This document shows, piece by piece, positions 36,602 to 62,220 of a DNA stretch of 64,000 nucleotides. The notes below the pieces were generated by a model. That model was not told where the DNA came from and did no database searches. It was given only the letters and a program-made list of their open reading frames with translations. The position numbers and the translations under genes were made by a program. Position 1 is the first letter of the stretch, and every line of letters begins with the position of its first letter. The stretch comes from Monocercomonoides exilis PA203 (taxonomy: Eukaryota > Protista > Preaxostyla), in NCBI GenBank assembly GCA_001643675.2, contig LSRY02000033.1:124001-188000 (forward strand). The letters run 5' to 3'.

Positions 36602-37781
36602 TCTTGTTGTTTGAAAGGAAAGTTCATTTTGCAAAGCAAAGTGCTTCAAAAATCTTTTTTAGAAATAAGCTCAAACAATGTGTTGGCTTGGGGAAATGAA
36701 GTGGAAACAGTTTCAGCAACGCATGCCTTTCGGGAAGAACTGGACAAATTCTGGCCCATTCAAGATTATTAAGTCTATTTATTAAGGGTATTTTTTTTCC
36801 CAAATAAATTGATTTCAAATGTTTTGTAAAGAATTTTGAAAACTCTTAAACATAGATAATTATTGAAAACTTCAAAACTTCTTGAATTGTTGTTTGCGAG
36901 AAAATGAGACTTTTTCAATAAAGGAAGTTTTTTCCTAAAAATTAGTATATTTCCTAACTTTTGCAAGCCATAGAAAAAAATTATCATGTTTAATAATCTT
37001 CAAAGAAAACTATTTCTGCACAATAACATAAAACACAATTAAAAAAATTAAAAAAATTTTTTTATGTTCTTTGTTTCGATGTGGAGAATAAAAAACTTAA
37101 AAAAAAGTTTGCACAAGTTTAACAAAAACACACGATTAAAGATAAACAGAGGAGAAGTTCATTTTGAATGAAACACAATAATAAAACACGGGGAAAATAT
37201 GTGATATGAATAAAACGTAATAATATTAAACAAAAAAAAAAAAATTCAGAAAAATTCAGAAAAAATGCAAAAAACTTCAATAAACCATCAGTTTCCTTTT
37301 ATTTTTAAATAAAAACCAGAAACATAAAATTGCTGAGCACATACAGTCGATAAAGAAACAGTTATTTGAAATACTTGGAAAACAGAAAGGAATAATGGAA
37401 AAAGAATTTTTTTAAAAAAATCAAAAGAAAAAAACACTTTTTGGAAAAATACAAAATAATTGAAAGCCTTTAAAGAAAAATAACACAATGACAAAAGCAC
37501 TTGAATAATATATTTCCAAAATTTATTGGTTTAAAAATCAACTAAAAAAGGAAAAAATAAAGTTCATATCTTCAAAATGCAACACTATAAAGTTCTTTTT
37601 TTCTTCTTCTTTTTTCTTTTGTGAGTCATTTTCATTAAAGCACAATAATTATGTGTAATAAAAGTTTTGCTGAACTATTCTCTATCTGTTATCATTTCGC
37701 ACATAACAGATCATTCTTATTTTTTTTTAAAAAAAAAAGAAAACAGTCATCAAACATTCTCAACACAGTTTTTTAAGTTCT

Positions 37782-40700
37782 TTATTTTGCTTCGTTGCTG
37801 TTCAAAGTACTCTCTCTGATGGTAACAAGCGTATCATAATCTCCATTGCCCGTACCAGAACTAGCACTGGAACTAGCACTGGCACTGGAACTTGCACTTG
37901 TTCTAGCAGCCGCACTGTTACAGTCGCCTCCCAGAACAATCTGAAGAGCCTCAACATTTCCCGTGCGGATCTGCTGGTACAATTTCGTTTTCTGCTCAAC
38001 CGTCGAGCCGGCTGCAATGTTCTTTCTTCGAGTCAGTTCTCGCTCTTTCTCGCTGGCCATTTCAGCAATCGTGCTCTTTTCGATTGTTCTATCTATCTCT
38101 TCAAGGAGCGCTGACCACTTCTTTTCCTGCACATCCAAAGGCAGTGAGTCTGTCATGTCAATAACAGCATCGTCTGCACCGCTGGGCCATCCCATTTGCT
38201 TGTTTTCGTTCATCTTCTCCTCAATCAGCTGTGCCCTCACACGCATCTTCTGTTCAGCTGGATTCATCGACAGGCCTTGCGCCTTCATCTGCACACGAAG
38301 ATACTTTCTGAATGGCTTGGAGCCAATAAACTGCGGCAGCACTACCACACGAAGCGCTTCAAACACAAGCATCACAATTGGGCTGAAGAACATCGGATCA
38401 GGAATGAACTGCTTCACTCGGATCAGCGCAACTTTCTCCCGCAGTGGAGCCAGTATCCGCTCAGGAACTTGGAATGGCGTAACAAACTTGCCGCTCTCAG
38501 AAAGCGAGTCGCCTGAGAAGTATCTGTCCCAAATCTCAATCGCTGCTCCTCTTTTCCGTCTTCGTATGTTCGAAAGGATCTTGTCCAGCTGCCCGCCTGC
38601 TGTCTCCTCAGTCGGAGTGTCTTCGTTCTCTTTTTGTATCAGCCGAGCAAAGTCTGTTGCAGAAATGAAGAACTCCCATGCAGTGAGTGAATAGTACCGT
38701 GCAACAAACAGAGTGAACGAGATCAGCAAGTGATCCGCATCTTCAAGTATCATGTCGATCAGTTGAGATGCTCCACCAACGCTGAGTCCAGACTTCGCTC
38801 CAACCGACATCGAAGTCAAATCCTCTGCCAGGAAGCGATTTGCCACAACGTACTCGGCTCTTGCACGGAGCAGGTCTTCTTCTCTCTTCTGCTGCTCCTG
38901 CGTGGCTGCCTTCAGCGAAGCCATAATCTCTTCTTCTGACCGCTGCAGTGACAAAGCAAGTGTTGCTGCTTTCTCCCTCGACGACTCGATCACTTTGAGT
39001 GTCCTCTCTGCCCTCAGCACACCAACACTTTCTGTCGCGATCTCCTTCCGCAGCTTCTCCTTCTGCACTTTTCGCTCTTCTTCTTGCATCGCTGATTTTT
39101 TCTTTTCCAGCTCAAATTCATACAGCCGTCTTCTTTGATGCTCTCTTTCTCTTTCTTTCTCTTTTGTTCTTTGTTTTTCGATCTCTCTCAGCTTCTTTCT
39201 CAATCCATCTCTTTCTTTATCCACCGCTTTTGTTTCTCTCAGCAGTCTCAACTTTTCTGCATCCAACAGAAGCTCTTCATCTTTCTCTTCCAAATCAGCT
39301 GTGTGCTGTTTGTCGACAGTTGCTGAGACCAGCTCGGCAGTCGCTCCTCTTTCGAACTCACTCACTGCAGATGGCACAGTTGCAATGTTCTTCATCCACT
39401 TCATCTCTTTTGTCCCAACAAACACAAACTTCTTCTGCGTCTTGTTCTTATTGCTCTCCATTACAGCGGACGAATCCTCGCTGGAATTGTCTTTCTTCTT
39501 CTTGTTCTTCTTCTTGTCTTTGTCTTTGCCTCCCTTTCCGTTGTCGTCAGCAGCTTGTTCAATCGTGTTGATTTGGAGGAAGAACGGAATAGATACAAGA
39601 TTCGTCTGATACAGGAACGATGCACAGATAATGTACTCATCCTCGCACAGAGCCCCAAGCACCGATGGAGGTGCAACAGGCGTGTCATTTGTTTCAGCCT
39701 CACATGGAATTGGAGTGTAGATATTCTTCCGCTTGAACAGTGCAGGATCGCCTGGCTCAGGCACTCTTCCTAAGCGAAGAGCAGCAAAGCCAGTGGTTGA
39801 ACTGAACGACAGAGCTGCTCCAGTTGTTGGGCGAAGTGTTGAGAATGCTGATGCAAGCGTTGGCTTGGACATTGTTTGGGAGTATGCAAGTGTAAATGAT
39901 GAAGGCTGAGGGGCCAGTGCATCTCCTGAGAATGAAGATGGTGATGTAGGAGCACTGGATTCTGTCTTATCGGCAGCTGCGATTGCAGCAAGTGCTCTTG
40001 GATTCAGTTTAACAGGTGTTGAAAGTGCATCACTAGACGAAGAAAGAGAAGAGGATGATGAAGGCGTGAATGCAAGTGTTGCAGAAGACGACAAAGGTGA
40101 TGGATTTGAAGGCAAAGCCAGGTCAGATGATGATGAAGAGATGGAAAGAGGTGACGGATTGGCTGTCTGATGGCTTGCAGGCAGAGTCTTCCATCCCTTT
40201 GAGGATGAACTAAGAGCTCCGTTTTTGCCTCCTTTCACTCCAGCGCCTTTGGAAGAGGCAAGCAGAGATGCAGCGCTCTTTGCCTGTGGATAGAGCATGT
40301 GGAGTGGCAGATTCAGGAAGCACCGCTGGAGCATCGAATAAGCTGAGTGTGTCACTCTTGTCAGCTGGCAGACAATACGCACGTGCAGACAATGATCAGG
40401 CTGTGGCAGAGTGAACGAGTTGTATCTCATAGAAGCGCGAGGGACTGTTGGTGGGATGAACACAGGATCCAAGCAAAGTGTTGATGGTCCCAGCCCAGTT
40501 GTGGTGCTTGTAGCTGCGTTGATCACAGCGAACTGGCCAGCTGTCATTGCCATTGTGGAAGGCGCAGCAGACACCAAAGGAGCACTTACACCGCCGCGCC
40601 CACTCGAAGCGCTGCTGCCGGTGTCTGGATCTGGAACAGGTACAGGTGCAAAGGATGCATGCGAAAAGGCTCTGACAAACGGCTGGGCAGACTCCAAGTG

Positions 40701-43700
40701 AGAGTACGCATTGTAGAACTGTCCTGCAGCTTGCTGCAGAAGAGGTGGGTGGCTGTGTCCAGGCAAAGGCGCACCCACAACAGAATCTGAACCAAAGGCC
40801 AGCCATTGCGCTTTGCATGCAAGAGATGAGAGCGATTCTGCTAGAATGTATGAACGGCCAACGTAATTTGGAGATGTGATGATCAGAGCATCGATCATAA
40901 GCTGTGCAAAACGCAAAGTGGAAGGACCGAACAGAGTGGGAGATGCAGACAAAAGAAGATCCCAGGCGTCAAAGAACATGAGCAGTGCGCGTGCTGAGTG
41001 ATGGTTCCATTCTTGCTTGTAGAGATACACATGGAATGGCTGCAGTGGTGCAGGAAGCCCAATCTGTGGCTCTGACATTGTGGCAACAGATCCCTGTCCA
41101 CTCATCATTGTCGCCATCAGCCTCTCTGTTCCTGATAGCGAGTACTTCTGCACAACTACGATTCTCTCAACAATCAGTCCTTTCATTGCATCCACCACAT
41201 CCAAAAGCAAGTTGTCTGGGTCTGACAAAATGATGTTGTCACCACGCAGCTTGTCAAACGCATTCAAAAGCGCAGTCAGTGCCAAATTGAGAGCAGATGG
41301 AATTTCACCCAATTCCTGGACAAGTGAACGCAACAATCCTGATATGTACTCCAGGAATGACTCAGCTGACCACACCTCCTCCACACTCGTCAGCGAAGGT
41401 TGACCAAATGAGTCTGAGCGCTTCAGAGCTTCATACGGCACGATCTCCTGTGTGAGAGTTGTGCTTATGCCACCTGGCGGTGCTCCCACAAGAGACATGA
41501 GAGGCTCCAGCTCCTTAATGTGTGCGTTAAAGTGATCAAGTTCTAAGGCTCCCTTTGCCAATCGACTCTTCACAACGCTTTTGCCCTTTGTTGATGCCTT
41601 GCCGCTGCCTCCGCTTGACGAAGAGGAACCAGAATGAGAAGAGCCAGACGCATCTCTCAGAAGCATTGTTTGGGACATATCTGTCTTCTCCTCTGTCAAA
41701 AGGAGTGCTCTGTCTGCTGCTGAAAGCAATGCGCCTCCTCTGCCTGAAGATATGCGGCGTGCAATTGTGGACAGACGCCATCTGCGCTGTGATGAGAGAG
41801 AAGCATGAATGACAGGCACAATCACACACAACGCAGTGAACAGCGTGTCGACCCAGCTGGCCCATCCGCCATTGACAGTCATTGGCAAATGCGAGAAGCA
41901 ATGAGAAGTTGGATAGCTTTCTGTGGACATCACAAAGTTTGTGTCAATTGCAGGGTTGATCAAAAGAGCTATGCACTGCAGGGCGATCAAAGAAGGTGAG
42001 GCCACTTTGAAGTCTCTGTGAAGATCACTCTGCAAGTTGGGGACTCGCGGGACTGATGCTGCAGATGAAGAGGAAGCAGGCGGATTCAGTGCAAGTGCAG
42101 CCGAAAGTGGTGTTGGATTGGCTGACGGGGTGTTTGAGAGTGACGAGATCGGAGCAGAAGAAGACGATGGAGCAGCAGATTCTTCAGCCAGACTGAAAAG
42201 CGGGTTGGCGCTGAAATGGCTGAACTGCATCATTGCCGTTGACTGCTGAAGCGAATGTGTAGATTGTCCGTCGAATCCAATGCTCATCATTCCTCCGCTG
42301 TTCACTCCTCCATTTGCACTCACATTCATAAACGGCTGCTGCACTAGAAGACGCATCAATGCCTGTGACTGAACAGACACAGAGCCAGTTGCAATGTCCC
42401 TCATTGTTCTCTGTCTCCTCTCGAGTGCTGCATTGAACTGTGCAAGCGTCGAATAGAGTGTTCCAGGTGTCTTCTTCTCGTTGGCAGCTGCAGATGTCTT
42501 AGCAACTGTAAGCGTGCGCCTCTGCCTGCGGTTGAAGAAGTGCTGCGGGTGTTTTAGCTCATACACGATATCGCCAGCATATGCCTGCTGCTCAGCAGCT
42601 GCGGCAGGCGATGAGAGAGAAGAGCAATCATCACTGGCGATTGTGGAAAGCGAGGTTAGCGACGAAAACGGAGAAGAAACAGACGAAAGCATCCAGTTTG
42701 CAGAGCCAGCAGTAGCTGAGTTCATGTTCATTGCCGTCTGTGACAGTTCGTCGTATGTCACATCAAAAGATGGATGCAGCAAGATAGGCCGAACTGACAG
42801 CAAACGAAGCAGAAGTGGAAGGAGACCAGGGAACGGAGGCGGGCGGATGGTAAGCTGCTGCGGAGACACACCCCACAGCGTATAGTGTTGAGCAGTTGGG
42901 ATGGCGTTTGGCGCAGGGCCTCTTCGGAACAGTGTGACAGATTGCACAAGGCTCATCAGCTCTTTTGGCATCATTTCTCTGAAGTCGGCCATTGATGTGA
43001 AGGTAGCTATGCTCTTTGGCTCGCTGCGGCTGCGGGCAAATTCTGCAACAGCTGGGGCAGAGTTGAGGGAGGTGTATGTTGTGAGCGAAGGAGGCATGTC
43101 CAAATTCTCCTGATACTCGTCAGTGTATAGTGAAGATGCTGCCATGTGCACTTTTTGCATCATCACCAGCACAGGCTCCGTGTAGCCGTTTGGTCGGATG
43201 GAGTATTCCTGCCCAAGTTCTTTCTCCATCGATGATAACACTTCAGAAGGAAGAGAAGTCTTCTTCCGCACAACAGAAGATGGTTCGCTGTTACTATCAG
43301 CACTTCCACTAGCTGTTGTTTTGAATGTTGCGCTTTCGAGGTCTTTGCTCTTCTTCTTCTTCTTTTTCTCAGTCGACGCTGTTAGCTCATCAGGAATCAC
43401 CACACCACGATGGCTGGCAAAGGAGAAGAAGTCTCTCAGTGGAGAGTGCTCTAAGATGTTGATAGAGTCAATCGTGGGGCCATTCGTCTCTTCCACTTGG
43501 ACGTTTTTGCTCTTTCGCGAGCGAAGCAGCGAGAATTTATCGCCCATCTGCTTTTTCTCGTTCTCTTCGATTTCTGCAATGATTTCTCGGTGTCTGCGGT
43601 ATGATGGCCACGATGCAGCTTTCAGTTCAGCCAGGCAATTCGTGTCTGGATTGCGCTGTGCCAACAGAGAGACGATGAGTCTGGTGCGTTTGTGTGTTGC

Positions 43701-46700
43701 AGTCAGCGAATGGAAGACAGCAGAAACAGCTTGTGAAGCAACTTGCACATCGGGATGGACACAGACCAGGTAAGGCACAAGAATAGAGGCCTCTTCCAAG
43801 AAGTTGCGGGTGGATACGAAGAGCTGAGCTGATTGGAGCATCATGTAGTTTGCTGTGAGTGGCAATGTCTCTTCTTTCGCTTTGCCTTTCTTGGAAGATG
43901 GGGATGTTGTTGCTGAAGAAGACGAAGTTGAAGCTGATGATGAAGTTGCTGAAGATGACGAAGTAGATGCCGAAGATGATGAGGATGATGATGCAAATGA
44001 ATCTTTGTCTCCTGAAAGATATGGCTTAAGTCCACTTTGAGGCATTCCCGTTCCATCTTTATTCATCACAGATTGCATGTTTGCTCCTTTCGCTTCCTCA
44101 TTCTGCTGTTCCAGCAGAGCTGCCCTGTGAGCCGAGGCAAGAGCAGCAGGGGTTATATTCAACAACAAGAGATGTCCCTGATCAAGCAAGTAAGGATTGG
44201 ATAGAATGCCATTCATAAACAGAGTCTCGCAGATGAGGATGACCTGGCGGATGATGTGAGGCGAAGACCAAGCTGGAGATGGAAGCACATGGGACGGGAG
44301 CTCACTGGCAGGGAATGCATGCACAGGAATTGGCAAAGTGTGGGTGAGGGAAGATGGAGACGAGAGGAGAGAGATAATCAGAGAAATATCACTCAGCCTC
44401 ACGAAGGATGTCTGAGGTGTTGGGGGCATCTCGTCCTCTGCAAAGTCGTCGTCGTCTTCATCCGCATCATCGTCAATTTCGTCTTCGTCTTCCATATCGA
44501 TCAGCTCAAATCCTTCATCTCCATTTGCAAACCCTTCTTCCTCGTTCTTCTTTCGTTGCCATTGAATCCTTTCTTCTTTCTTTCTTGCCTTCTCAAGCTT
44601 CTTCATCATCCTGCCGTATGAGCCAGCGGTTGGTCTTGGTTTCTGTTCCGTGCCTGGTTTTGGCGCATACTCACCCAGTTGTGAAGACAGATAGTTCAAA
44701 GAGATCAGAATGGCACGATAGATTCTGAGTGATGCAACACACACAGCAGGTGACTCATGTGCAGTTGCCCACTGCACAATGCAGCGCATCAGGACGGCGA
44801 TGGCTGAAGGAGAGTGGAAGAATAGAACTACCAGTGCGTGAATAAACAGAGGGAGTGGGATGGGCTGTGAGACATCGAGTGCATCAATCATCTGCTCCGG
44901 TGTCAGTGTTTGAAGAGAATTGTTATTGTCTTCTGCCATCGAAAGCAAGGATGGTGCATTTGACGATCCATTTGCAGTAGAAGCGGTGTTCTGCGCTGAG
45001 CTGCTTCCAGACACTGAGAACGAGCCAGCACCTGCTCCGATGGATGATGCAGAAGAGAGTGGCTGGCCAGTGCCCTTGTTATTTGTGTTGGGAGGAGTGA
45101 ATGTCGGGTAAGTGTACGAATCCCACCGCCAGTCAATTGGCCACGGCTCAGCAGTGTCTGTGTAGCGTGCATAGTGTGTGGAGATGCGGGAGAGCAGCAT
45201 GCGCGCTTTCGCCCACATCTCTCTGAAACGGGGTGTGGCTGTGAAGGATGGGTACTTATCGTCCAGCGACTGTTGCCCCCACTCATGTACCAGCACCTGA
45301 GGACGGTACAGCACAAGCACATCCACCAGCCTCAAGAGGAGATGGCGGATGACTGACGGAAGGTTGTTGTTTGGTGTGGATGTGGCTGTGGGAAAGGCAG
45401 AAAGTGTTGTTCCTGAAGTCGAGCCAGTCGAGCCCAGTGCAGCCACTGCGATGCTGTGCTGCCCTGTGGGCGTGTCGCTCTCAGGTGAGGCAGGAGACAG
45501 GAAGATCTGCTGAGGAGGCGCATAATGAGTCAGTGAGAAGGCAAACAGCATCGGAACAAACGAGAGAATGGCGTTGATGTCGGAGTTGATGTACCCGCTG
45601 ATCATGTTCGCGACAATTCCACGTGCAAACAGGAACTGTCGTGTCTGCTCCAGTGCCAGCATTCTTGCTTTTTCCAGCTGCACTTTCTTTCTCTCCAGAT
45701 TGAATTGCTCGCCACTCCTGTTCCTTCCTGAGCGCCCTTTCTTCTTTCCTTTGCCTTCTGTTTTCTCTGTAGCAGCAGCTGCGGCAGCCGCTTGTTGCTG
45801 CTTCAACGCAGCAGCAGCCAGAACAGCATATCTCCTTCTCACCTCCAACGCAGTCGAGCGCTGAAATCCGTGGAGTGCCTTCCACATTGTGGGCGTGAAT
45901 ATCACCAAGATGTTCTCAAGTGTGGCAGCTGGGTGGATTCTCAGGAGATACTCCATGATGTGCCAGACAGGCAGGATCGAGGCGGGCTGACGGACACCTG
46001 TAGAGATCAGCTGGCGGATGATGACGGTGAAGTTGCGAGAGATTTTGAACATGTTCTCTTCGGATATCATGGCTTCTCCTTCTTCATCATCCTCTTCATC
46101 CAGATCTTCTTCCTCTTCTTCTTCAGCAACAGTGCCAGCAGCAACTGATTTTTGTGTGGATTCGACAATTTGTCTCAATGCTTCATCGTCTGAGTCTTCA
46201 TCGTCTGCATTGGCAGAAGTGGAAGAAGCTGTGATGTTCGGCGACAGACCAACAAGCGCAGCATTCTTCAGAGAAACCAGTTGCGAAGAGCCAGCATTCA
46301 AAGCAGCTTTCCCTCCCTTTCTGAATGCTCCAAACTTCTTCCCCACAACTCCCTTCTCCTTCAGCTCACTCAGCCGGATTCCTCTCAGCTTCAGCTTCTT
46401 CACGTATCTCTTCATCGCCATCCGTCTCTTCTTCCTCCTCTGCCTCTCTTTCCCATCAGCGTGTGTAAATGCCAGCCTTGCCCACACAACAAGATACGAC
46501 TCTAGCAGAGCATCCGATGATGTGTGCGAGCTTTCTCTCAGGTCTGGCAAAAGAGGCATTCTCTGCTTGTTCAGAATCATCAGTCTTGCAGAGGCTCCAA
46601 GCACAGATGAAACAATTGACCCACTGCCTCCTTGTTTGCTGGCAAGAATAGAGAATGACTTGCCTGCGTTGTCCTGCTGTGCCATCAGTTCGTTTCCATC

Positions 46701-49700
46701 TGGCAATGCATGTGACGTTGTCTCCAGCCGTGCTCTCACAAGCCCAATGAGAATCTCCAAGAAGTGGTTCCGTGTGTCCATGTCAGATTTGATCAGGTTT
46801 GACACTTCGATCCAGGGGACGATCAGCCACATCGACGACTGTGCAATAGAAAGAGGGGTATCTGCCTCAGCCAGAATACGTGGGAGCGAATGGCTCTGCA
46901 GTGTGCCGATGAAAGGCTCTCTCAGAACGTCCTGAGTGAACTCGTCGAGGTCTCTGCCCACATCATCCTGCTCTTTGTTGTCCAAGTCATCAGCTGACTC
47001 GTTCCACGTGTTGTCCTTCATGTGTGCTGCCACTTTCTCCAAATGCATACACATCCACTGAATCACATTCAAGCCCAGTGGTGCCAGTGCCTGTGCAGTT
47101 GCCTCAGAGAGAGGGAGAGCAGCTGCTTGGAGCGCGCTGGATGTTGTGGCAGTGAGCAGTGCAAAGCGTACAGTGTTGAACACTCTCAATGCAGCAATCA
47201 GGTTTCGCCGCTCGAATTTGTGAGTTGCTAAAAATGTTGGATCGAACAAAGGATTCTCCGGTGGTTCAGCTGGTTCTGGCGGAGATGCATCGTCAGAAGG
47301 CTCAGAGGGTGCAGGGAGAGGAGGAAGAAGATCAGTGACATCTTCAAACAGCCCTCTTTCCACAGCTCTCAAAAGATAGCGAAGCACTTTTCGAAGGACA
47401 AGAAAGGCTGCCAGTCGAACTTCGACAATTGAAGACATAATGTGCAGCAAAGCAAATGTGACAGCAGCTGAGATGAAGACGAATATTTCGTGCAGGTTGT
47501 AAGGTGAGGGATCCCATTCAAGACACAAGAAGCGCAGAAAACGGACTCTGAAGACAGGGCCGCGTGGCATTCCAAAGGCGAAGCAATCATTCATCAGGCG
47601 CGCAAACATGTGATGTGGATAGAAGGACAGCAGAAGAGACAAAAACGGAGTGATGGGGTGAGTATCCTTGGCATCACGATATGAAACATCTGCTTTCTTT
47701 GGTGCGATTCCTTTCTGTGTGAGGATGTTGCGTTCCGCAGAAGACGAGGAAAGAGGGAATGAGAAGCATAAGCGGGACATCCTGTATTCATTTGCCAGCA
47801 TTTGTGCTGCCTCGGCTAATGCGAAGAAGCGCAGAGAAGTTGAAGAGATGAGAAGAGGATTGAATGTGGGCAAGATGTCCATCGAGACAAGTGAGTTTGA
47901 AGCTGCATTCGACTGAGCAGACGCAGAAGAAGCAGAAGGATCAGGAATGTTTGTTGTTGGCGGCAGTGAGGCTGTCATTGGAGTGAGTGACATTGTCATC
48001 GGGGAAGCGATCATTGCAAGTGCTGAAATTGGCTCGCCCATCACCATATTTGCAGGCTTGCCACCAATCATCCTTTGCCGGATGTAGAAAGACAGCTCAG
48101 CTTCCATCATTATTGCTAGTGGTTTTGTTGTTCTCTTCCGCTTTCTGAATTTAAGCTTCATTTGAGCATCTGCAGACAACTCACCGTTCTGTGCAGGCTC
48201 AGCCTCTTCATCATCATCGTCAAGATAGTCTAGATCCAAGAAGTCTGCTGGGGGCATAATGCCATCAATCGCACCAGCAGGGATTGGGATGGTGCCTTCA
48301 GTGACTGCTTTCTTCAGCCCGCTCTTCTTCGTCGAGCGTGCCAGTGCGTGCTGCCTCAGCCGCTTCTCAACCTGCTGTGAGCGGCTGCGGAACTTGTCGA
48401 TTTCAACACGCAGAAGCTCTTCGTTGATGTCTGCTGCGTTGAACTCAGCCAGTGGAGCATACAATGACGGATGCACATGGTTCTTCTCAAACACCAGCGG
48501 AAGGCGCGGGTCAAACAGACGCAGGATGTGCGAGACACCTGCGTGTGCCGACAGCCTCAGTGACATTGTTGTGTGGCAGAAATATCGATAGCACTTTGTT
48601 GCCAGTTCTACGTTCTTTCCACGACCTTCTCTGAATTTCTCTCCCTTTCTGGTTGCGTCTGCCAGCTCGTTCACATCTCTTCTGCATTCCTTGTCGAGTG
48701 CTTCAAAGGCTTGGTTGAATACGCCATAGCCTGTGCAGTTCATCATCAGCCTCAGCACTTCCACACGCAGCGACATTCCCCACGTTGCCAAGGCCTGCAA
48801 CAGACCACGTGACAAAGAGCACATCGGGAAGCCATCAACATAGCTGGGCACAACAGCCACAAACACAAATGCATTGCGAGTGATCGGAATGGTCGGTACA
48901 TCTTTTGTTGGCTGGCGTTTTGCAAGTGATAACGCAGATGGATCAGAAGCAGATGGAGAAACTAAGGTTGTCGTTGTAGTTGCAGCAGCAGAGGCCAGTG
49001 CATCAGAAATAGAAAGAGTGGCCATTGAGCCTAAGGATGTTGTCTGAGGAGCTACTGAGCGCTTGTTGAAGGAAGACTTTGCAGAAGACACAGCTGAGGA
49101 TGCAGAAGCAGACAAGTCATCCACAATTGCAGACATCACACCATTAGAGGAAGAAGAAGCTGAAGCAGAGGATGAAGAAGAGCCAGTTGTAAGTGTTTTC
49201 ATTTCTTCGTTCCAAGGCTGTTGTTCTGAAAGCGCACCAAACGAGAATGGCTGCCAAGGCGAGAATAGTTCGTCAACTTCGACTTTTGGCTTCACTGGCT
49301 CTATTTTCTCCATCTCTTCTTTCTCCTTCTTTTTGCCTTTCTTTTTGCCTTTGCCCTTTTTCGTGTCTTTGATTTCCACATCCTCTTCAACTTCTTCCAC
49401 CAGCTTCTCAATTGCTTCCGAGTCTTCAAACTCCAATTTTCTAACAACGTCGCCAATCACAACCATCTTTGCTGGGGAAGAGAACGCATATTGTGAATAG
49501 ATGCTTGGCCCCTGTCCATTAGCATCCAGAGTGACAGCAGAGGAAGACGGCTGGAATGGAACGAGACAAGGCGACACACCCAGCGAACACACACAGAACT
49601 CATCGCTTGTTTCTTCCACCGTCGCATCTCTCAAAGCAGCATCCATTCCAAAGAGAGATCCAGAAGAGATAGAAGCAATAAGCGCGTTGGTCACTGAAGG

Positions 49701-52700
49701 CGCATGCCCCATTTGTGAGAGCTCAGAAGAGAGAGGATACATCGACAGTGAATCGAATGTGTGTCCACTCAGCGAAGACGCCTGCATCATGTGCAGAGAA
49801 GAGGCCCAGTACCATCTGGCTAGCAAGACAACGTCTCTTTTGGATGTTGGTGTGGACAGGAAGTATTCAGACAATATTCCTGTTCCTTCTCTGTCGCGTG
49901 ACATAATCTCTCGAATCATCTGCTCTTTTGCACTTAGCCCTGCTTTCTCTTCGGGCTCTGGTTCTTCCTCCAGCAGTGGATTGAGCTGTTCTTTCTTCTT
50001 CTTCTTCTTCTCGCCCTTTTCTTTGTCCCCCTTCTCATTCTTTTCGTTCTCGCTCTTCATCCTTGCAATACGGGCTTCTGTGTTGTCCACATCAAGCAGC
50101 TCGTGCGAGTTGATTGAATCTGCAATGGCACGAGGCGGAGGCAACCTCAGCGATGGAGGAGGTAAAAATCCCAATGTGAGTGCATGTGCTAATGCAGACA
50201 CCGCGCCGATCGCATTCACCGTGCGGAGAAGAAAGTCCAGCACACCTCTGTCTTTGCTAGAAGCGCTCAGTGAGTTACTGTCTGGTGCTGGCACAACATG
50301 CGAAACATGATCTCTTCCAACAGAGAAAGTGCTCAGGATTGAACCCAACAAAGGAACATGCGGCTCTTCTTCTTCTTTGTCGTTGGCTTCTTCGCCAATC
50401 ACAATCTGCTCTGTCTCGTAGCATCTGGCTGGAAACAGCACATCACCAAATCGAGTGAAACGAGGCAGACAACGCACCAAATAAGGAAGATCAGTCATGG
50501 CTGCAAGCAGAGATAGATAGAAGCACATAATAACATCTGGTGAGCATGCCAGTGCAACTGGGAAACTTGTGTTCTCTGCGATGACACGCAGCATTCGAGG
50601 CACAAGCAGACGCTCATCAATGGCAGACAGCCTATCAGAAGCAATGGGCAAGAATGTGGGAGTGGGGAGGTTTGTGATGTATTGCACTTGATCTGAACTA
50701 AGGGCGGAATGAGGGGCCTCAGATGAAGATGATGATGATGAACTTCCTTCAGGTTGTTGCGGAGGAAGGCCAGCTGCTTCGCCTGCGGCTTGCTGCTCAG
50801 CCAGAAGTCTGGCAGCCTCAGCAGCTTCTGCTGCTGCTTTGGCTTTGGCTTCTTCCTCTTGTTTCGCTTTCTCCTTCCTTCTCTTTGCCTCTTTGTATGA
50901 AGGGAAGAAGATATTGCACCAGACATCTGTGCAGTGCAGGATGGGCAAAATGGCTTGTGGATTGGCGACAGACAACGCAAAGAACGCTCCGTTCTGGAAT
51001 GTGAAGATGGGGGTGACCAAGCACTGCATCAGCAGCGGGGCCAGCTCACAGATGTGTGTGGTGTACTCGTCAGACTCCATCACCATCGTCACGCGAGACA
51101 GCGAATAAGGCGGATCAACCAGTGTGGAATCAGTCAGCGAGCTCAGCCGGCTAACCCCATCGTCTCCCACAGCAGCTGCAGTCAGTTCTGCAAACTCGTC
51201 TTTTCCTTTCCTCGGGTTAGCAGCATAGCCCAGAGGGTCGGCAGATAGTGTTGCTTTGTTCTTTCCAGTCATCTCCACACGCAGAATCTCTCCATTGTAT
51301 GTGCTCATTGCCAGCGCCCAGTCTGCCGATGAAACTGCTCCAAATGCCAGCCCTCCAATAAGAGTGTTCGGCACAAGCGATCGCAGCCCTTCTGTGAAGC
51401 CCATTGAAGAGTGCAAAGATGAAAGAGCATCAGTAGGGATCGGTGGAGAAGTCTTCAGGAATATCTTGGCGGCTGTGAGGAAGCTGACAGACGCTTCTGT
51501 GCTGCACATTGCCGACATCCGCTGCGCCAGCACGCCGAGGCATGCACTCCACAGCGTCTCCAAATGCATTTTGCTTTTGAAGATCTCAAAGAGCGAGGTG
51601 AAGTCGTATGTGTTGCAGGCAGTCAAGATCGTTGGCTTCAAAAATGGTGCCCGCTCTTCCAATATTTCTGGGTTCTCGTCTGGCTGGAGGATAATCTCTT
51701 GCTGGTTGGATCGGAGTGTCTCGATCTCCCACAGCCTGTGCAGATGCCGTCTTTCTTGCTCCACAAGTGCATCGATCTCCTTTGGTGCTGTCTCCGAGCG
51801 AGAAGAGAGCAGAGACGCTACTCTCGTCAGCATTTCAGTGTTGGGGGATTCTTCATCGTCCCAGTCTATTATGAGTGGCTCGTCCAAATTGATGGCGCGG
51901 GATTCCTGTGCAGCAACTAACCACAGCAGAGAAGGAACGTTCTCCAACGTAGGAGGAGGAGGAGGAATGTAGTTGAGAACACGTGAAAGCTGCCGAAAAG
52001 CAGAATAGACAACATGGTTTCCAAAGGAAGGAGGAGAATACTGCGACAAAAAGGAATGAATAGCATCGAGTGCTGTAATGTCTGATGAAGACTCTGAAGG
52101 AGATGAGAACTGTTGCTGAATGCGTCTTGTGATAGAAGATATCCATCCACACGTTGAATGGTACAGCTCCACATCTTCCTCTTCCATGTGGATCTTGTCA
52201 GGGTCTGGTGTTGATACAGCTGGCAGAAGAGAGAGCCAAGAAGAGCCAGCCTCAGCAGGGACAGCACGGATCACTGCAATGGATGCTGCAGAGTGTGCAA
52301 TAGACACAATTGACTGCGATGAGAAATAGAACTGACGAGTGATGGATTCCAGTGCTTTGAATGCTGGATGTTCAAACAGCGCGTCTTCACCGCTTGATCC
52401 CAGAGGCCCCATCCACATTCCCTTCGATCCGAAAGGTGACTGTTTGCCCATCTGAGCAGAGTCGTATTTCCCCTTTGATTTGAATCTCATTGTGAGCGTG
52501 TCAAAATCTGAAGGTGTGAGAAGCTCAGTCATGTCATTTTCTCTCTTCCACATGTCAATTCTGGATGCCAATTCTGACTGTGAAAGGAAAGGTGACAGGA
52601 ACAACGGGGTTGGGATAAGGCTGGGGCTGGAGATGGCAGAGAAGGAAGTTGGGATAGGAGCAGATGATGTAGAGGCATACTGCATGGTTGGGTGTTGTGC

Positions 52701-55700
52701 GTAATCGTGTCCTGTGGATGCAGAGGAAGATGAAGATGACAACATCGAGGGAGGCAAGGCGTCTTCGTCCGAAGGGATGTATCGTCCAGTGATGATATCA
52801 TAGAGCGTTGGGTATGTGATAATTGACGGCTTATTCAGCAGCTTGATCATCTCGTTCTTCATCCATCGGTTGATCTCTTCCGCATTTCCCTTTGAAAGTG
52901 CATAGACTGCATTATACAGCGGGCTCACCATCTCCATCGCTCCTCCTGCAATCGCCATGAGTGAGCCAATAATCGTCTCAAACCCTCTCTGTGGATACAG
53001 CTGATCGCACCTCTGTTTGTTGAGCGATGCTTCCAATAACAAAATTCCATGTTTCAACTGCCACACTTTTGCTTGTCTCGCCAGCGTCGCTGCTGCCAAC
53101 ACCGCCTCATTCAGCTCGTGTGTCTGCTTCACCAACCTCATCACAATCGTGCGCAGAGCAGTCGAGCTGTGTCCCATCAGAAAGAGAGAGAGACCATCCA
53201 CACGTTGCAATAGACCATGGATGACTGATGCCTGTTCAGTTGTAGAGACAGACAGGCTGTACAGAGGAGCGACTGCAAAGCAAGTGTCGATGGTGTGTGT
53301 GGCTGAGAGGACAACAGACAGTTTTGCGTGTGCTGCAGCCATTTCAGAGCGCAAAGAGCGTGTCCACTGCTGCAGAAGCACAAGAAGAAGCAAAGAAAGC
53401 GTAGTCAAGGGCATTTCTGCTGTAGCCAGCTGCAGATCGGTTGTACTCACTCGCTTTTTCAGCTGCCCGGCTCCTTGTGCATTCGTGTCGTTCCCATTTG
53501 CACCACCAAGTTCATCGCCTCTCTTCTTCTTCTTCTTCTTTTTCTCCTCTTTGTTGTTCTTTTCTTGTTCCGTCTGCGCAGCAGCTGCCGCTGCCTTGTT
53601 CATCGCCGCTTCTTCCTCTTTGAGTTTTCTGTCAGCCATCTTCTGCAGCAGTGCAGGGAGCGACTGAATTTCCTTGATGACTTTCAACACGAGCGATGCC
53701 CTGAGTGTTGGGTGCAGCTCCATCGCCTTTTGGAGAGCAAATCCGACTGCTGCTGCGGTTGGTGCGTGTCTGTGCAGGATCATCCGCACAAACGGTGTCT
53801 GGGTGAAAATCGACTGGCACTCGCGGATGGAGAAAGATGCCATAAAGGGAACAGCCAGCACTGCATTCTGCGCCATCAAAAGAGAACACTGAAATCGCCC
53901 GCTTTCGCCAGCGCCAACAGCAACCACTCCGTTTGGCTTGGACCCTCCTTTCGACTTTGATACAACGCCGCTGCCGTAAATCTCCGCGTTCGTGATGTGG
54001 AATGCAGCACCTCTTTTGTTCATTGCCAAGTACATTGAGACAGGTGTGCTGTAAGCTGAAGGCACAAACCGAGAGACGGCACAGAGTGGAGGGTCGGGAA
54101 GGATCAAGCCGCAGTCCTCTTCTTCCTCCATGTGCTCGGCCACTGACTCCACCAGTGCATATGTTGGTGTCAGAATGCTGTCTTCTACTTCCAGTGCATT
54201 GTTCAGTCCGCCTTTTTTGCCTTCATGGAAGAATAAATCTTTATTGTGTCGAACTTGCCTTTCTTTGTCTGAAAGAGATCCGCTTCCAGCTTTATCAGAA
54301 GATGCAGAAGAAGCAGAAGCAGACGATGACGATAAAGAACCATCTGCAACACCATTCGCTCCAATTGTTCCACGCGAAGATGAAATGCCTTGCCCACCTG
54401 TGGCCAAAGCATCCGCACGTGATTTCCCCATCAGCTTGTCAACAACTGCAGCGTTTCCCAGCGAAGAGACAAGGGAAACAGCAGAGTGAAGACCCACAGA
54501 CGCTAAACGAGATGGCGTTGCAGCCATTTTGGACTGCTGGTTGGTCAGAACAGCAGAAATGAAGGGAAGTGTGCTGGATGGGACACCAAAGCCAAAGAGA
54601 GAGGTACGGCCTTTGGAAGATGTCATGCCACGAGAAGAGGAAGAGGAAGAGGAAGAGGAAGAGGATGAAGATGATGAGGATGAATAAGAAGATGTATTCT
54701 TCATATCGAAGAAAGAGAATCCGAGTGCATCATCATCATCTGCATCATCCAAATCTTCGTCTTCATCAACCTCATCAATCCCCAGTGCAGCATCAAAGTT
54801 GAACAAGTACTCATCTTCGATGTCTCCTTCACCTTCAACTGCCTCTTCCTCGTCGCCCAATCCATTCACACCCCACTCTCCGTCTCTTTCCTTCCATCTG
54901 TCGCACTCTGCACACGAGCTCCTTCCATTGAGTGTGTATCCTGTTTCCCTCTTCCCTTTCTCTCTCGCATGGTCTGCTGCTGCTCTCTCTGCTTTGTCCT
55001 CGTCATCCTCATCCCCTTCATTCAGCACATAAGCCGGCCGGTACACCACTCGATCTGCATCCTCTTCCTTTGTGAGCGTAGCCATCGTCTCTGCCTCCAT
55101 CTGCTGCGCTGTCCTATGTGCGCCATGCACTCCACTTCCTTTGCCTCCGCTGGCTCCTGCTCCACTCCCTCCTGCACTCATCATCACTCCTTCCTCTTCT
55201 CCTGATGTGCGGATGTTCTCCTTCACAATCGCCATCACTGCCAAATGTGTCTTCTTCTTCTCCACATCGCCTGATCGCACAACTGCCATGCTGCTGTGGC
55301 CCAATTGACACGTTTCTGCTGCTGCTCTCCTCCTCTTCTCTCTCAAGCGTGTTCTTTCTGCTTTGCTCATCCCTCTCAGCCTCAAAAGTCTGTGTGCATT
55401 CATCTTCCTCGCAGCCACTCGCTCCAATGGTTCTAAAACGGTGTTGTTCCAAGGGGCATCTCTGGGTGTGGAGCCGTGGTTGGAGCCGAACAGCTGCTGT
55501 GCTCTGGAAAGCGCAATGACAGGATTCTCAAAGAGCGTCGTGTGTGGAGCAGAGGAAAGCATCTCTCTTTGCCCAACAGCCTCAGCCAGCAAAGCATCTG
55601 GCAATGAAGGAAACAGTGTGGCCTCTGCAAAGTTGAATGGAAGATCCACAAATCCGTCTTTGATCCCACTCCGGTTCTTTGGTCTTGCACGGCTAACTTC

Positions 55701-58001
55701 AATTCCCTCAACACTCTCATCTTCTGAATTCGTTTCCTCTTCTCTTCCAGCGGCTTGCTTGTTTTCTGCTTCTTCTTCACTGACAGACCCTCCAAATGTG
55801 CTCCCAGTGTGCGAAAGTGAGGCGAACGATGAAGAGAACACATAGGAGTTCAGAAATTCTGGTGTGGAAACACCACGTGGATGCTGCGATGCAAGCTGCC
55901 ATGCAGTCAAAGCAGATGAGCGGTCAGCCAGACACTCAGAGAGAGTGGGCTGTGTAGTGCATATTCCTGTTCTGTCCAGCCCGAACTCCTCCACAAACTT
56001 CCGCAGACAGAGCCTAATGAACGGCGCAAATGCCTCGTCGCTGAGAGACGAGATAAACAGGATCTGACTCTGTGCAAACTGGAAGTACTCAGATCCTCTC
56101 AGGGGCTCCTCTCTCTTGGACGCCTTCACCATCATCCCGGACTTCTGGAACGAGAACGAGATCCAGCTCTCCATCCAGCCGTGCGAGCGGATGAACATGT
56201 ACTGCAAGGCGCGCAGCACAGCAACCATCGCGTGCCGATACTCGTTCGGCTTGTCCATCAGAAACAGCACAACATTCTTCCAGAAGAGGTCAATGTCCAA
56301 CAGTGCAATTTGCGCAAGTACTCTTCCTCGTGCTGCTAATGTCTCGTCAAATTGAGGGGGAAGCGCATCGACACCTGATCCTCCTGCTCCACTGCCACCT
56401 TGCCCACCGCCTCCGGGAAGTGCCTTCCGGAGAAATAGAGTGTTGATCACTTCATTAAGAATATCATCAGTTGGAGTTTTTTGTGCGTTCTGATCAAAGA
56501 TGCGTGTGGAGCACATGGAGTTGATGGAAGGTGTGAGGCAGACACATCCTGAAGTAGAATGGGGAAGAATGGCTGATGATGCTGAACTCGAGACATACGA
56601 AGGAGAGCCATCTGTTCCAGAAATGGAAGACGCTGCAGAGCTGCTTGAGTCGTCGAATGGTGTCCAAATCGGGGTGTTGAAGCGAGGTGTTCCCGAAAGC
56701 ATCATCTGAAGTGCATCTGTTGCTGTGACTGCACAGCGCGTATTCCGCGACCAGATGACGGTGATGAGGAGCTTGACGACTTCAGCTGAGCGCTCTCGAT
56801 AAATGTTTGGGAAAGCCGTGGCGATTGTGCTGATGAGAAGAGGAGTATCGCTTGTGACTGGCTTTGTCTTCAGCTGGCGAGCGAGCGAGCTGAGAAGATC
56901 GGAAAGAGACTAAGGAAAAAATGATAGTTTTTTTTTTAAAAAAAAATGAAATGAAAATATAAATGATCGTGCAAACGTTTGAATCCTGGTTAAGTGCTTG
57001 AGTTGGGGCTTTTGAAATGACTGACATGAATATACCGCTCAAAACGCTTAAGTGAAATGATTTGGCTTGGTCTCGTGACAAATGGTACACCAGAGCCTCG
57101 ACAACGTCATGTAATGAATTTGAATTTGTACATTCTTGCCATCCAAATGCAAGAGATGAGATCACCACATTTGCAGGCTGAAGTGGAAGTTGGCCTTGAA
57201 TTCTTCGAAGACTTTCCACCAGTTTTCCAACTGCCAAATCAAAGCTGGAATGAAGTGAAAATATGCATAAGAAAAAAACATGTCAATAATAAAACACTTT
57301 CGTCATATGTTAAAATCATGAACACACAATTCTCTATCATGGAAAAAGACGCTGGTAATCTTACCCCATTGAAGACTGATTTGAAAATTCATTTTGAAAA
57401 CATATTCATTGGCAGTATCCCAGTTATAGTCGCTTTTATCAAAAAACAAGCTTGTTTTCTTCATAATTTCAACAGCAGTATATCGTGAAACAGATGAAGC
57501 CTTTGAACAAAACGTACTAAGCGCGTCTGTTAAGCCGAGTAATATTGTCCAAAACTATAAATGAAACAAAAATAGAATAAAAAATTATGAATATCTATTT
57601 TCATTAAAAATAAAAAGCAGACAATAATCTGCGACGAGGTTGGAGACATTGCTTCTAATGGACCCAGTTTAAGGAAATGTGGTTCTTTTCCAGCAAATTT
57701 TTTGTGATGGTCAAAAGAAATAATGTTTAGAATGTAATTGCAGATGTCATCACTGTGCTCGTCTGAAAATGATGAAAGTCTTTTTAGACTCTTAATATAT
57801 ACAGATTCCGTTCTTGGAAAATACACCCATCTTCGAAACGCATCCGAATCCTGAAAAAGTGAATGAAAAACAACAATCGATCAAATAAAAAAAGGAAAAT
57901 TGGATACAGACCTCAAGTGGGTGTATTCGATTATTACTAAAAATAAGATCGACCAACTCGGAACAAAAAACGTCAACAGCGAATTTTGCGGAGTTGTTCA
58001 T
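37782..58001 (-). CDS. fry: Giant Furry/Tao3/Mor2-family scaffold (~6646 aa) with a C-terminal coiled coil and RGS domain
   Basis: Exons 58001-57912, 57850-57623, 57554-57328, 57244-56977 and 56909-37782, phase-consistent. Furry N-terminal blocks occur in the expected order: TPLLISTIATAFPNIYRER..CAVTATDALQMML; VINTLFLR..RVLAQIALLDIDLFWKNVVLFLM..AMVAVLRALQY; FVRMILHRHAPTAAAVGFALQ; LSLLLLVLLQQW; LQRVDGLSLFLMGHSSTALRTIVMRLVK. RGS pattern at ~38295-38765. Confidence 0.85.
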
Positions 58002-58624
58002 CTTTTCTTTAAAGACGTGATCTATCCCTAAATTCTGCAAATGAATAAAAAAGATAAGTTTGATTATTATTCACATAAGTTTTGCAATATGTTAATAAAG
58101 CATGAACAGTAGTTTGAAAGTGAAAATTGTTGCATTCTTTATTTCTTTGAATATATTAAACTTAGAAGCATATCAAGTTATTTGGAAACGAATGTTTGAT
58201 GATAATAAATAAAAAAAAGAACAAAGAATACAATTAATTTCTTAAAAATACTCTTGATTTGTTTGCAAAAAATTTGAAAGGATGATGTGAAAACAGTTGA
58301 AATGAAAAAATAATTCAAGATGTTTTGTTTTCGAAAACAGCTTTGCACAAGAAAATGGTATAATTATGAAACGTTCTTAGAAAAAGGAAAACGAAATTTC
58401 TATGTTTCTCTTCCTTTTTTGACAAATTATTTTATTTCATTAAAAGTTTTTTCTGCTTTTCTTTTGAAATCTTAATCGTGAAAAAACTTTTATCTTTTTA
58501 TTCAAGCCAGTAATGGAAATATTTTAATCGAGTTCAAAAACTCGCCATTAAAAAGAAACAGTTATAAAAAAATAAAAATTATAATAATAAAATAATAATA
58601 ATAATAACACATTTCAAAACTTCT

Positions 58625-58832
58625 TTATGAAAACACAACACCTAATAGGATAAGAGAAGGATCATAAGGATTGCCTGTAACTGCTGTTATTTCGCGGCCA
58701 AACGTGTCGAGAAAGGCATCAACTTGAGCGCTGAGCTGAGAAAACAGAAACGGAGGCAGCAAAATAAGGGTGGAGGAAGAGAAATTTGAAAGTGATATTG
58801 ACTGCCTTGAGTAAGAGGAAGAAGAGGAAGGA

Positions 58833-58865
<33 letters not shown>

Positions 58866-60816
58866 TTATTCGACATATCCACAACGCCGATGCTTTTGTG
58901 CAGTGACAAATGAGCAGTTATTGCTTTCATCAGTCGCAGATCAGACTTGTTCGTGCATTCCAGCACAAACAAAGAGCATCCCATAGACGATGATGAATCT
59001 CCGCTTGAATAAGCAGAAGAAGAGGAATACGATGAGGATGAAGAAGAAGAACCAGATCTTAAAAGATTTGATGGTGCCATGTCCTTCTCCTTCAGTGTGC
59101 TCGACCATTCGTTCAGTCTCTTCAGTGCACTTTTAACATCTGCACTCAAAGACATCTCCAAAACAGAGGGGAAATTCTCCTTTTTCAGTGGTGTCGGCAG
59201 AAGCGGAGTGAAATTCATTGAAATCGGAAGCAGCGGCGCCAGGCGCAGTGATCGTGTGCACAATGAAGAGAGAAGAGAGAAGTGTTGTGTGCTTTGAGAA
59301 GACGGGTCGCTGGACGATGTTGAGGATGAATCTTGTTCGGATGTTGGTACTTCATAAACAGCATTAGAAGAAGAAGAAGAAGCAGAAGAAGATAGAGAAG
59401 GTGAAGAAGGAATTAAAGAAGAAGAAGAAGACGATGATGATGAAACACTTGCATCTGCTGTTATTGATGGCTCCTCTCCTTTGACAGTCAGCGCAGACAG
59501 AGAAATTGACTGCAGTGAAGGGTCGTTTGTTGTCAAAGCTGGATTAATTAAGCTGAAGAGGCTGTTGAGCTCGTTCGATGCCTTGCTGATCTGCTGCACC
59601 ACTCCTGTTTTTTCGCCTCGACGCGCTGACGACTGCTGAGAGGAGGAGGCAGAGGAAGAGGAAGATTGAGATGTTTTGTTGGTTGTGTTGGTTTTGGAAG
59701 AACGAGAAGGAGGAGAAGAAGTTGGACCAGAAGCAGACGAGGATGAAAATAATTTGGAAGGAGATGACTGTAAAGTTGAAGAAGATGAGGATGAAGACTT
59801 AGAATATGGCGATGATGAAAGATTTTGATCGGCCAAGCCATCAGACGAGAGAGAAGAAGAAATGAGCACAGGCGTGGCTGGAGGTGAGTCTGTGCTTGTG
59901 GCTGGATGTGAAGGAGAGGAAGAACGTGAAGATGCAAAAGAAGAAGATGATGAGGATTTTCGTGGGTGTTGTGGACGTGTTGGAAGCACTTGACTGTGTT
60001 GGTTGGAAGATGTAGCAGGCACTTCTTTTGAAGATTGATCTGTTGAAGAAGAAACAGAAGAAGAAGAAGAAGAAGAAGAAGTTGACAATTCTCCTGATTG
60101 AGTGTTTCTTTTCTCTGACTTTCTAACATTATCTGCACTTTTCTTCTCTTTCAGTGCTTCGTCCATCACTTCCTTTCCATTTTCGTTCTCATTTTCATTT
60201 TCATTTTCATTTTCATTGCCGTTCTCAGATTCCTCATTCTCATCCTCTTCCTTGTTCTTCTCTCCTTCATTGCCGTCTGCTTCTCCCTCGTTTTTCTCCC
60301 TTCCTGCTGCTTGATCCGTCATCAGCCCTTTCTCTGCTGCTGTCTCAATCACCTCTTCTCCTCTGCCTGTCTTCTTAATCATCATGCCTTCCTCATCACT
60401 CCTCACAATCACTTTCTTCTTCGCCTCTTCTTCCATTTCTTCTCTCTTCTTCAGCAGCGCCTCGTCTGCCATCGCAAAGGAATCCATGCTGGCGACTTCT
60501 GCTGGCTTGATCTTCCCAGTCAACACTGCTATTCTAAACGTCCCGTTCTTCTCGTCAGTCAAATTGAACCGCAGCGACTTATACTGGTCTCTGTATCCCT
60601 TCGCATCCTCCGAGCCGAACTGCTCAAAAAGCGCGTTCTCAAGCTGCTTGGCAAGCGCAGAGATGTGAGAAAAAGTTGGGTCGAAGTCAATAGAAAGAGG
60701 AAGAAGGCTCTGCTGCACAGACAGCGGGTTGTTGATGATGACAGGCGGGCGCTGTGGCGCTGATGCAGCGGAGGGGGCTGTGGTGTTGCGGATGGGAGTG
60801 GTTGTTGAAGTGGATG

Positions 60817-60847
<31 letters not shown>

Positions 60848-61891: not shown

Positions 61892-62220
61892 TTTATATTC
61901 TCTTTTAAATTTTATATTTATAAAGTGATCCAAAAATTTGCATGAACAACGTTTATACGTGATAAAAATTCGAAAAATAACAACAGTGATTTGCAAATAA
62001 CAACGAAAATAGTCATTGAAAAAGCAGCAATGTATTAAATAATGTGGTGAAATATAAATGAGAATGCTCCAAACCTGTATTTAAAAGCCGATAGCTGTCA
62101 ATTAATCAAAAATAAAATGTCAAATTAAGAAACTATTTATTTATGGAACGATCAAAAATTTGATTGACCCTTACTTATATGCGCAACAAGTAACATTAAA
62201 CTTTTTTTGATTTTAGCTTG
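61892..62220. promoter_or_regulatory. Probable bidirectional promoter between divergent genes
   Basis: 329-bp AT-rich gap between ATG 61891 (-) and ATG 62221 (+). Positional inference only. Confidence 0.45.

Follow-up and report, generated by a model that had tools for sequence, protein, structure and literature searches.

A giant oxymonad protein family, distinct from Furry, with a probable divergent RGS-homology domain at its C-terminus

RGS-homology (RH) domains are found without GTPase-activating (GAP) function in Axin, GRK, SNX13/SNX25, the rgRGS of p115/PDZ-RhoGEF and the axonemal protein RGS22. We know of no Furry protein that carries an RGS domain. Some RGS domains no longer have GAP activity and serve as scaffolds, and among the metamonads G-protein-coupled receptor and G-protein signalling is fully reduced in Giardia and partially reduced in Trichomonas, which retains G-alpha and RGS proteins (PMC3971589). 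Here we describe a gene at 37782-58001, minus strand, of a 64,000-nucleotide stretch (the window) of the oxymonad Monocercomonoides exilis PA203 (contig LSRY02000033.1, positions 124,001 to 188,000), for which a preliminary description had proposed a Furry/Tao3/Mor2 scaffold of NDR kinases fused to an RGS domain and linking G-alpha signalling to the RAM/MOR network. Our analysis makes a different reading likely, in which a five-exon giant gene of an unnamed family encodes a body unrelated to Furry and ends in a divergent RH domain used for docking. The novelty lies in the domain architecture, which sets a known fold at the end of a family of giant proteins that has no name.

With the RH domain as query, an exhaustive phmmer search returned two proteins, Blattamonas nauphoetae KAK2950010.1, which has 5,506 residues and is annotated 'hypothetical', and an 899-residue fragment. 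KAK2950010.1 aligns with the window protein end to end in 12 ordered blastp blocks of 25-55% identity, including the C-terminal module, and was the sole match (E 3.5e-254) when window residues 2610-4020 were used as the query. The fragment matches, at 100% identity, a section of an 8,680-residue open frame in the same genome (C8:1322180-1348219, plus strand), which shares 15 ordered blastp blocks with the window protein, again including the C-terminal module, and carries long inserts inside its RGS-like domain. Since this paralogous frame does not close at its 5' end, further exons probably lie upstream. By these alignments the family is one of unnamed giant proteins of 5,500-8,700 residues, with at least two paralogs in M. 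exilis and an ortholog in another oxymonad genus, and it has apparently been seen so far in oxymonads only. They also indicate that the fusion of scaffold and RGS-like domain is real and old, because it is common to the Blattamonas ortholog and the paralog from the same genome. The architecture named in the preliminary description can be followed into both relatives as far as the C-terminal module is concerned, but not in company with Furry.

When the three members are aligned, the bin that contains the RH domain ranks among the best conserved against the paralog (36% identity, against 13-30% for most other bins), a sign that the domain is under constraint. Conserved blocks in long succession, interrupted by Ser/Ala/Glu/Lys low-complexity inserts, make up the body, which matched no curated family. 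A profile search of the PDB with the best-conserved scaffold block of 1,400 residues found no match, two metagenome scans (one with the domain alignment, one with the alignment of the 1,400-residue block) found no relative, and a word-indexed search with the domain alignment found no homolog among proteins of 113-360 residues. A further word-indexed search with the C-terminal 568 residues also gave no homolog; this result is uninformative, as coiled/charged words swamped the candidates and even the true ortholog was missed. All three family members carry the C-terminal module, which is made up of a charged helical linker, the divergent RH domain and a charged tail, placed in the window protein as follows.

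38781..39308, minus strand: charged helical linker of about 176 residues, 48% E/K/R/Q, read from the sequence and conserved in the Blattamonas ortholog
38271..38774, minus strand: divergent RH domain of 168 residues, from Pfam, language model, Foldseek and VIA
37785..38270, minus strand: C-terminal tail of about 162 residues, a charged helical part followed by a Ser/Ala-rich end, read from the sequence

Pfam RGS (PF00615) was the sole family matched by the window domain (E 0.084-0.1, 13.4-13.7 bits, profile positions 4-116 of 117). It was matched in two of the three family members, the second and diverged member being recognised independently with a best E of 0.01. Among language-model features, the top ten named clusters were all PF00615 (score 0.87, 171 of 256 features common, recognition 2462). 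For structural comparison we used an AlphaFold2 (AF2) model of the orthologous domain (KAK2950010.1 residues 5172-5322), built from a three-sequence alignment with no templates. The top 50 Foldseek matches of this model were all RGS or RGS-homology chains (best E 0.012, template modelling (TM) score 0.44-0.70), with R4-type RGS proteins in the lead (RGS8, E 0.012, TM 0.55-0.63). VIA, run against 48,161 PDB representatives, placed RH domains at every one of ranks 1-15, with Z falling from 10.8 to 6.9 and root-mean-square deviations (rmsd) of 2.6-4.0 over 107-128 residues; the next chain, an unrelated one, stood at 5.8. The leading chains were SNX13 (Z 10.8, rmsd 2.6 over 121 residues), RGS3 (10.2), SNX25 (10.1), RGS4 (9.9), the Entamoeba RGS-RhoGEF and Axin (9.6 each) and a bovine sperm axoneme chain (9.0), with RGS9, PDZ-RhoGEF, RGS7, GRK2 (7.8), GRK1 (7.5) and p115RhoGEF also among the fifteen. 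Solved RH domains share only 12-17% of their sequence with the domain. The hydrophobic register is conserved as F..F, a W.FF box and a terminal F...F.K, which is the classic RGS pattern. As modelled, the end domain is an RGS fold: taken singly these lines are weak to moderate, and it is their agreement on one superfamily, unlike chance, that carries the assignment. The RGS-fold pattern that had been read at the far end of the protein is thereby upheld, its motif lying at 38750-38297 and Pfam, the language model, Foldseek and VIA all agreeing on RGS.

The segments on either side of the domain are less sharply defined. The 3.5-residue hydrophobic periodicity of the whole linker is reached by 122 of 500 shuffles and is not significant; in its second half the figure is a marginal 33 of 500, and the ortholog segment is stronger at 10 of 500. 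The first half rather resembles a charged single helix. A long coiled coil, as had been described before this domain, is plausible at most: the conserved charged stretch of about 176 residues is there, but heptad periodicity is not significant overall. The C-terminal tail is poorly conserved, with 13-16% identity in the last alignment bin.

The gene itself is real and transcribed, and its limits at 37782-58001 are right. It runs on the minus strand from 58001 to 37782 in five exons with a coding sequence (CDS) of 6,646 codons, as established from RNA contigs and exon arithmetic, and 96% of the CDS lies inside a single exon of 19.1 kb.

57912..58019, minus strand: exon 1, 5' untranslated region and start codon at 58001, 30 codons; RNA contigs and tblastn
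57851-57911, minus strand: intron 1, 61 nt, GT..AG; RNA joint 57849/57911 ('cut +1') in 4 of 4 runs
57623..57850, minus strand: exon 2, 76 codons; RNA joint, and tblastn with ortholog residues 29-116
57555-57622, minus strand: intron 2, 68 nt, GT..AG; RNA joint in 4 of 4 runs
57328..57554, minus strand: exon 3, 227 nt, open in frame; RNA joint in 4 of 4 runs
57245-57327, minus strand: intron 3, 83 nt, GT..AG; RNA joint in 4 of 4 runs
56977..57244, minus strand: exon 4, 268 nt; RNA joint, and weak tblastn with ortholog residues 156-224
56910-56976, minus strand: intron 4, 67 nt, GT..AG; RNA joint
37782..56909, minus strand: exon 5, 6,375 codons plus stop; scaffold body and C-terminal module

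The continuous reading frame reported earlier is confirmed, since the minus-strand frame from 56909 to 37785 is uninterrupted over 6,375 codons and closes with a stop codon at 37784-37782; counted from the first in-exon ATG, exon 5 has 6,307 codons. Exons 1-4 contribute 813 coding bases, or 271 codons, so that exon 5 is entered in phase 0 at 56909, and per-exon translation shows each exon open in its own frame. Assembled contigs from four metatranscriptome runs of one study, labelled 'synthetic metagenome', were aligned with 55201-58600, where one contig per run skips all four introns. The intron ends read CT..AC on the plus strand, i.e., GT..AG on the minus strand. These contigs represent spliced RNA-type molecules, short of one full-length transcript, and every sampled word of 37701-43600 was present in the four runs. 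The start is placed at 58001 because the N-terminus of the Blattamonas ortholog maps there and the spliced RNA contigs end at 58009-58019, with depth 0 over 58051-58600. In tblastn, that N-terminus matched 58001-57912 (50% identity), 57856-57593 and, weakly, 57201-57004, in accordance with the limits given by the preliminary description. The coding GC content is ~0.50 against ~0.30 in the flanks, a contrast expected for a protist gene. Searches of the gene were made exon by exon, with the complete Blattamonas protein representing the N-terminus. Upstream lies a separate Ser-rich open reading frame (ORF) of 1,123 codons (58625-61996, minus strand), which is not joined to the gene because RNA stops at ~58019 and coverage over 58051-58600 is zero.

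Whether the domain could serve heterotrimeric G proteins depends in part on what else the genome encodes. Six-frame scans, made exon by exon over 82.3 Mb in 101 contigs, gave 12 matches to the G-alpha profile PF00503. Eleven of these fall in short open frames within profile positions 156-262, the switch region common to G-alpha and Arf, and the twelfth is weak (E 0.07, positions 18-73, in a frame of 444 residues); across the 82 Mb, none of the 12 falls within the helical domain specific to G-alpha. The best, and the only one checked in full, is a 183-residue protein that scores 173.6 bits on the Arf family. The switch-region matches are located at C7:225868-226122 and ten other places, and a second one looks Arl-like by eye. 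We rejected the matches as Arf/Arl. The scan with PF00615 found nothing in the genome at E<=1. The genome thus appears to be without a detected canonical G-alpha or canonical RGS, both seemingly lost.

The residues with which RGS4 contacts G-alpha we take to be Ser85, Glu87, Asn88, Asn128, Asp163 and Arg167. In a register drawn by eye between the three-member domain alignment and RGS4, as known from structural work on RGS4-Gi-alpha1, the hydrophobic core is retained. The Ser85 position appears kept in two of the three family members, the Glu87/Asn88 positions appear to hold Thr/Ala, Thr/Pro or Ala/Pro, and the Asp163/Arg167 positions appear replaced in all three (Val/Gln). By the same register, the ortholog and the paralog retain Asn at the Asn128 position, for which the window copy has Gln.

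Given the fold, and by analogy with other RH proteins, we consider it fairly probable that the RH domain serves in protein docking; it would tie the giant scaffold to a partner rather than activate the GTPase of G-alpha. Such a non-GAP role is probably the right one because no canonical G-alpha or RGS was detected and several of the G-alpha contact residues look replaced. We further suggest, as a possible though doubtful extension, that the RH domain was kept as a conserved anchor of lineage-specific scaffolds after the loss of G-alpha and RGS and acquired a new partner. Candidates for that partner would include an Arf/Arl-type GTPase or a cytoskeletal component of the axostyle or flagella, compare RGS22 in axonemes. 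If this were true, the family would be the marker of a cellular structure or pathway peculiar to oxymonads and so far undescribed.

The best-surviving alternative, which we nevertheless judge unlikely, is that the C-terminal domain is a working RGS GAP for an unrecognised, divergent G-alpha or for a G-alpha-like Arf/Arl GTPase. The fold matches canonical R4-type RGS proteins (RGS3 Z 10.2, RGS4 Z 9.9) in addition to RH domains, the ortholog and the paralog carry Asn at the RGS4 Asn128 position (by eye), and another metamonad, Trichomonas, keeps both G-alpha and RGS proteins (PMC3971589). However, the 82 Mb held no match to the G-alpha helical domain, all three members appear, by eye, to carry non-conservative replacements at the positions of Glu87, Asn88, Asp163 and Arg167, and the window copy itself has Gln at the Asn128 position. 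Nor do we know of an RGS fold that acts as a GAP on Arf-family GTPases, which counts against a working GAP.

Several points weigh against the reading that we prefer, a divergent RH domain with a docking role. The Pfam scores of 13.4-13.7 bits stay below the RGS gathering cut-off of 23.9 bits, and the expected agreement with the RGS profile therefore holds for the whole-profile match (E 0.084-0.1) but not for the threshold. The AF2 model of the orthologous domain is middling (mean predicted local distance difference test (pLDDT) 59.7, predicted TM score (pTM) 0.44), and a first model, of the window domain with its flanks, was discarded as unusable (pLDDT 44.8). In VIA, helical bundles can reach Z ~13 by arrangement alone, and sequence and profile searches of the PDB with the domain alignment, the ortholog domain and the window domain found no RGS. 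Concerning function, the G-alpha scan scores best candidates only, so that a very divergent G-alpha could escape it; the contact-residue register was set by eye; and the Asn128 equivalent kept in two of three members appears to leave some room for GAP-like chemistry.

Some of these points would suit a further alternative, that the C-terminus merely continues the helical scaffold, with a bundle that resembles RGS by chance: Pfam scores under the gathering cut-off, PDB sequence-profile searches that gave no RGS, low to middling AF2 confidence and the ease with which helical models score a high Z all point that way. We regard it as quite improbable, because four methods converge on one family. 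RGS is the sole Pfam family and is matched from end to end of the profile in two diverged homologs, the top matches in the language-model atlas (10 of 10), in Foldseek (50 of 50) and in VIA (15 among 48,161) are all RGS or RH with Z then dropping from 6.9 to 5.8, and the hydrophobic register is conserved in the classic RGS pattern.

The identity of the body as Furry was examined separately. Pfam searches at E<=1 of exon 5, of ORF pieces that together span most of exons 1-4, of the paralog and of the whole ortholog gave no match to MOR2-PAG1_N, mid or C. When the genome was scanned in six frames with PF14222 (MOR2-PAG1_N) at E<=10, two places came up, both within one frame on another contig. 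This open frame of 7,135 residues (C20:925624-947028, minus strand) reaches 40.8 bits with MOR2-PAG1_N and 45.3 bits with MOR2-PAG1_C (PF14225), both over the curated cut-offs, and is by these profiles the genome's true Furry/Tao3/Mor2 ortholog; it is more than twice as long as the Furry proteins of animals, and no RGS-like module was found in it. The window protein had no blastp match to the C20 protein at E<=10, and hhalign of the three-member family profile against it aligned a Gly/charged low-complexity stretch only, nothing meaningful. For the first 1,000 residues of the ortholog, the language model gave a mixture of HEAT/ARM families as neighbours, scoring at noise level and with no Furry among them. 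Judged by these profile and pairwise searches, the window gene is not Furry/Tao3/Mor2.

The ordered Furry N-terminal blocks of the preliminary description consequently find no counterpart in a MOR2-PAG1 match at E<=1, the PF14222 scan pointing to C20 only. That description had itself held that the lack of such a match would undo the Furry assignment, and with no match found the Furry reading fails. Its fusion within one exon survives in part, in that the RGS-like end does share an exon with 96% of the CDS, but the body to which it is fused is not Furry. As to the proposed coupling of G-alpha to the NDR/MOR network, the NDR side is baseless in a protein that is not Furry, and the G-alpha side is weakened, none having been detected. 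A Furry scaffold of NDR kinases fused to RGS and joining G-alpha signalling to the RAM/MOR network is thus very improbable: the protein is giant and has the appearance of a helical scaffold, as Furry proteins do, and its RGS-like end is real, but three family members have no MOR2-PAG1 domain at E<=1, the PF14222/PF14225 matches of the genome sit on the 7,135-residue C20 frame to which the window protein shows no blastp match at E<=10 and only low complexity in hhalign, the N-terminal 1,000 residues of the ortholog neighbour noise-level HEAT/ARM families rather than Furry, and no G-alpha was detected in the six-frame scan.

A second named family was suggested by a single feature of the body.

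53505..53846, minus strand: acidic/lysine-rich low-complexity stretch with a borderline DUF913 match, 24.6 bits against a cut-off of 24.7

The equivalent place in the ortholog also matches six unrelated charged-region families, and the DUF913 match was rejected as compositional, being a charged stretch that overlaps matches to unrelated charged families. No DUF908, UBA, WWE or HECT domain was found alongside it, and with no HECT domain an identity as a HUWE1/Tom1-type HECT ligase was rejected; likeness to HUWE1/Tom1 is confined to the borderline match in the charged stretch of the window protein. In UniRef, the automatic name of the Blattamonas ortholog is 'HECT-type E3 ubiquitin transferase', which looks like a low-complexity artefact because the DUF913 match is compositional. 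We flag this name as a database misnaming.

Other long frames were encountered in passing. Incidental matches fell in open frames of 3,973, 4,327, 2,641 and 1,924 residues on C40, C11, C48 and C25. Very long frames rich in low complexity seem to be common in this genome, and size alone is therefore no distinguishing feature of the gene studied here. Two weak matches of equal score, C25:1582675-1583220 (minus strand) and C25:1589995-1590540 (plus strand), lie 7 kb apart with six stop codons each, which suggests an inverted duplicate of degraded sequence; the pair came up solely through incidental low-complexity similarity to the 899-residue fragment.

With no Furry-RGS fusion, this gene offers no physical link from G proteins to the NDR/MOR network. 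The best-defined part of the family is a divergent RH domain, in a genome with no detected G-alpha or canonical RGS, and it lends itself to the question of what role RGS folds play after heterotrimeric G-protein signalling has disappeared. Being small and expressible, the RH domain also offers a way to the partners of proteins whose size and idiosyncrasy otherwise put them beyond study.

Set against known systems, the window protein resembles Furry/Tao3/Mor2 in being a giant, apparently helical scaffold with low-complexity inserts, and the C20 Furry is similarly inflated; it differs in having neither a MOR2-PAG1_N/mid/C signature nor similarity to that Furry protein. R4-type RGS proteins (RGS4, RGS8, RGS3 and RGS16) are nearer to its C-terminal domain, as they supply the top Foldseek matches, reach high Z in VIA and share the Pfam profile over positions 4-116 of 117, but the window domain is below the Pfam cut-off, no G-alpha substrate was detected and the switch contacts are seemingly not conserved. 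From the non-GAP RH proteins it differs in having no accompanying PXA/PX, kinase, DH-PH or DIX domain and in closing, in this family, a protein of more than 5,500 residues with no recognisable family, at 12-17% identity. With these proteins it shares the same predicted helical bundle, a place in a large multidomain protein and the apparent loss, judged by eye, of several canonical G-alpha contacts, and a docking role for the window RH domain would resemble the roles of Axin, the GRKs, SNX13/25, AKAP10 and axonemal RGS22.

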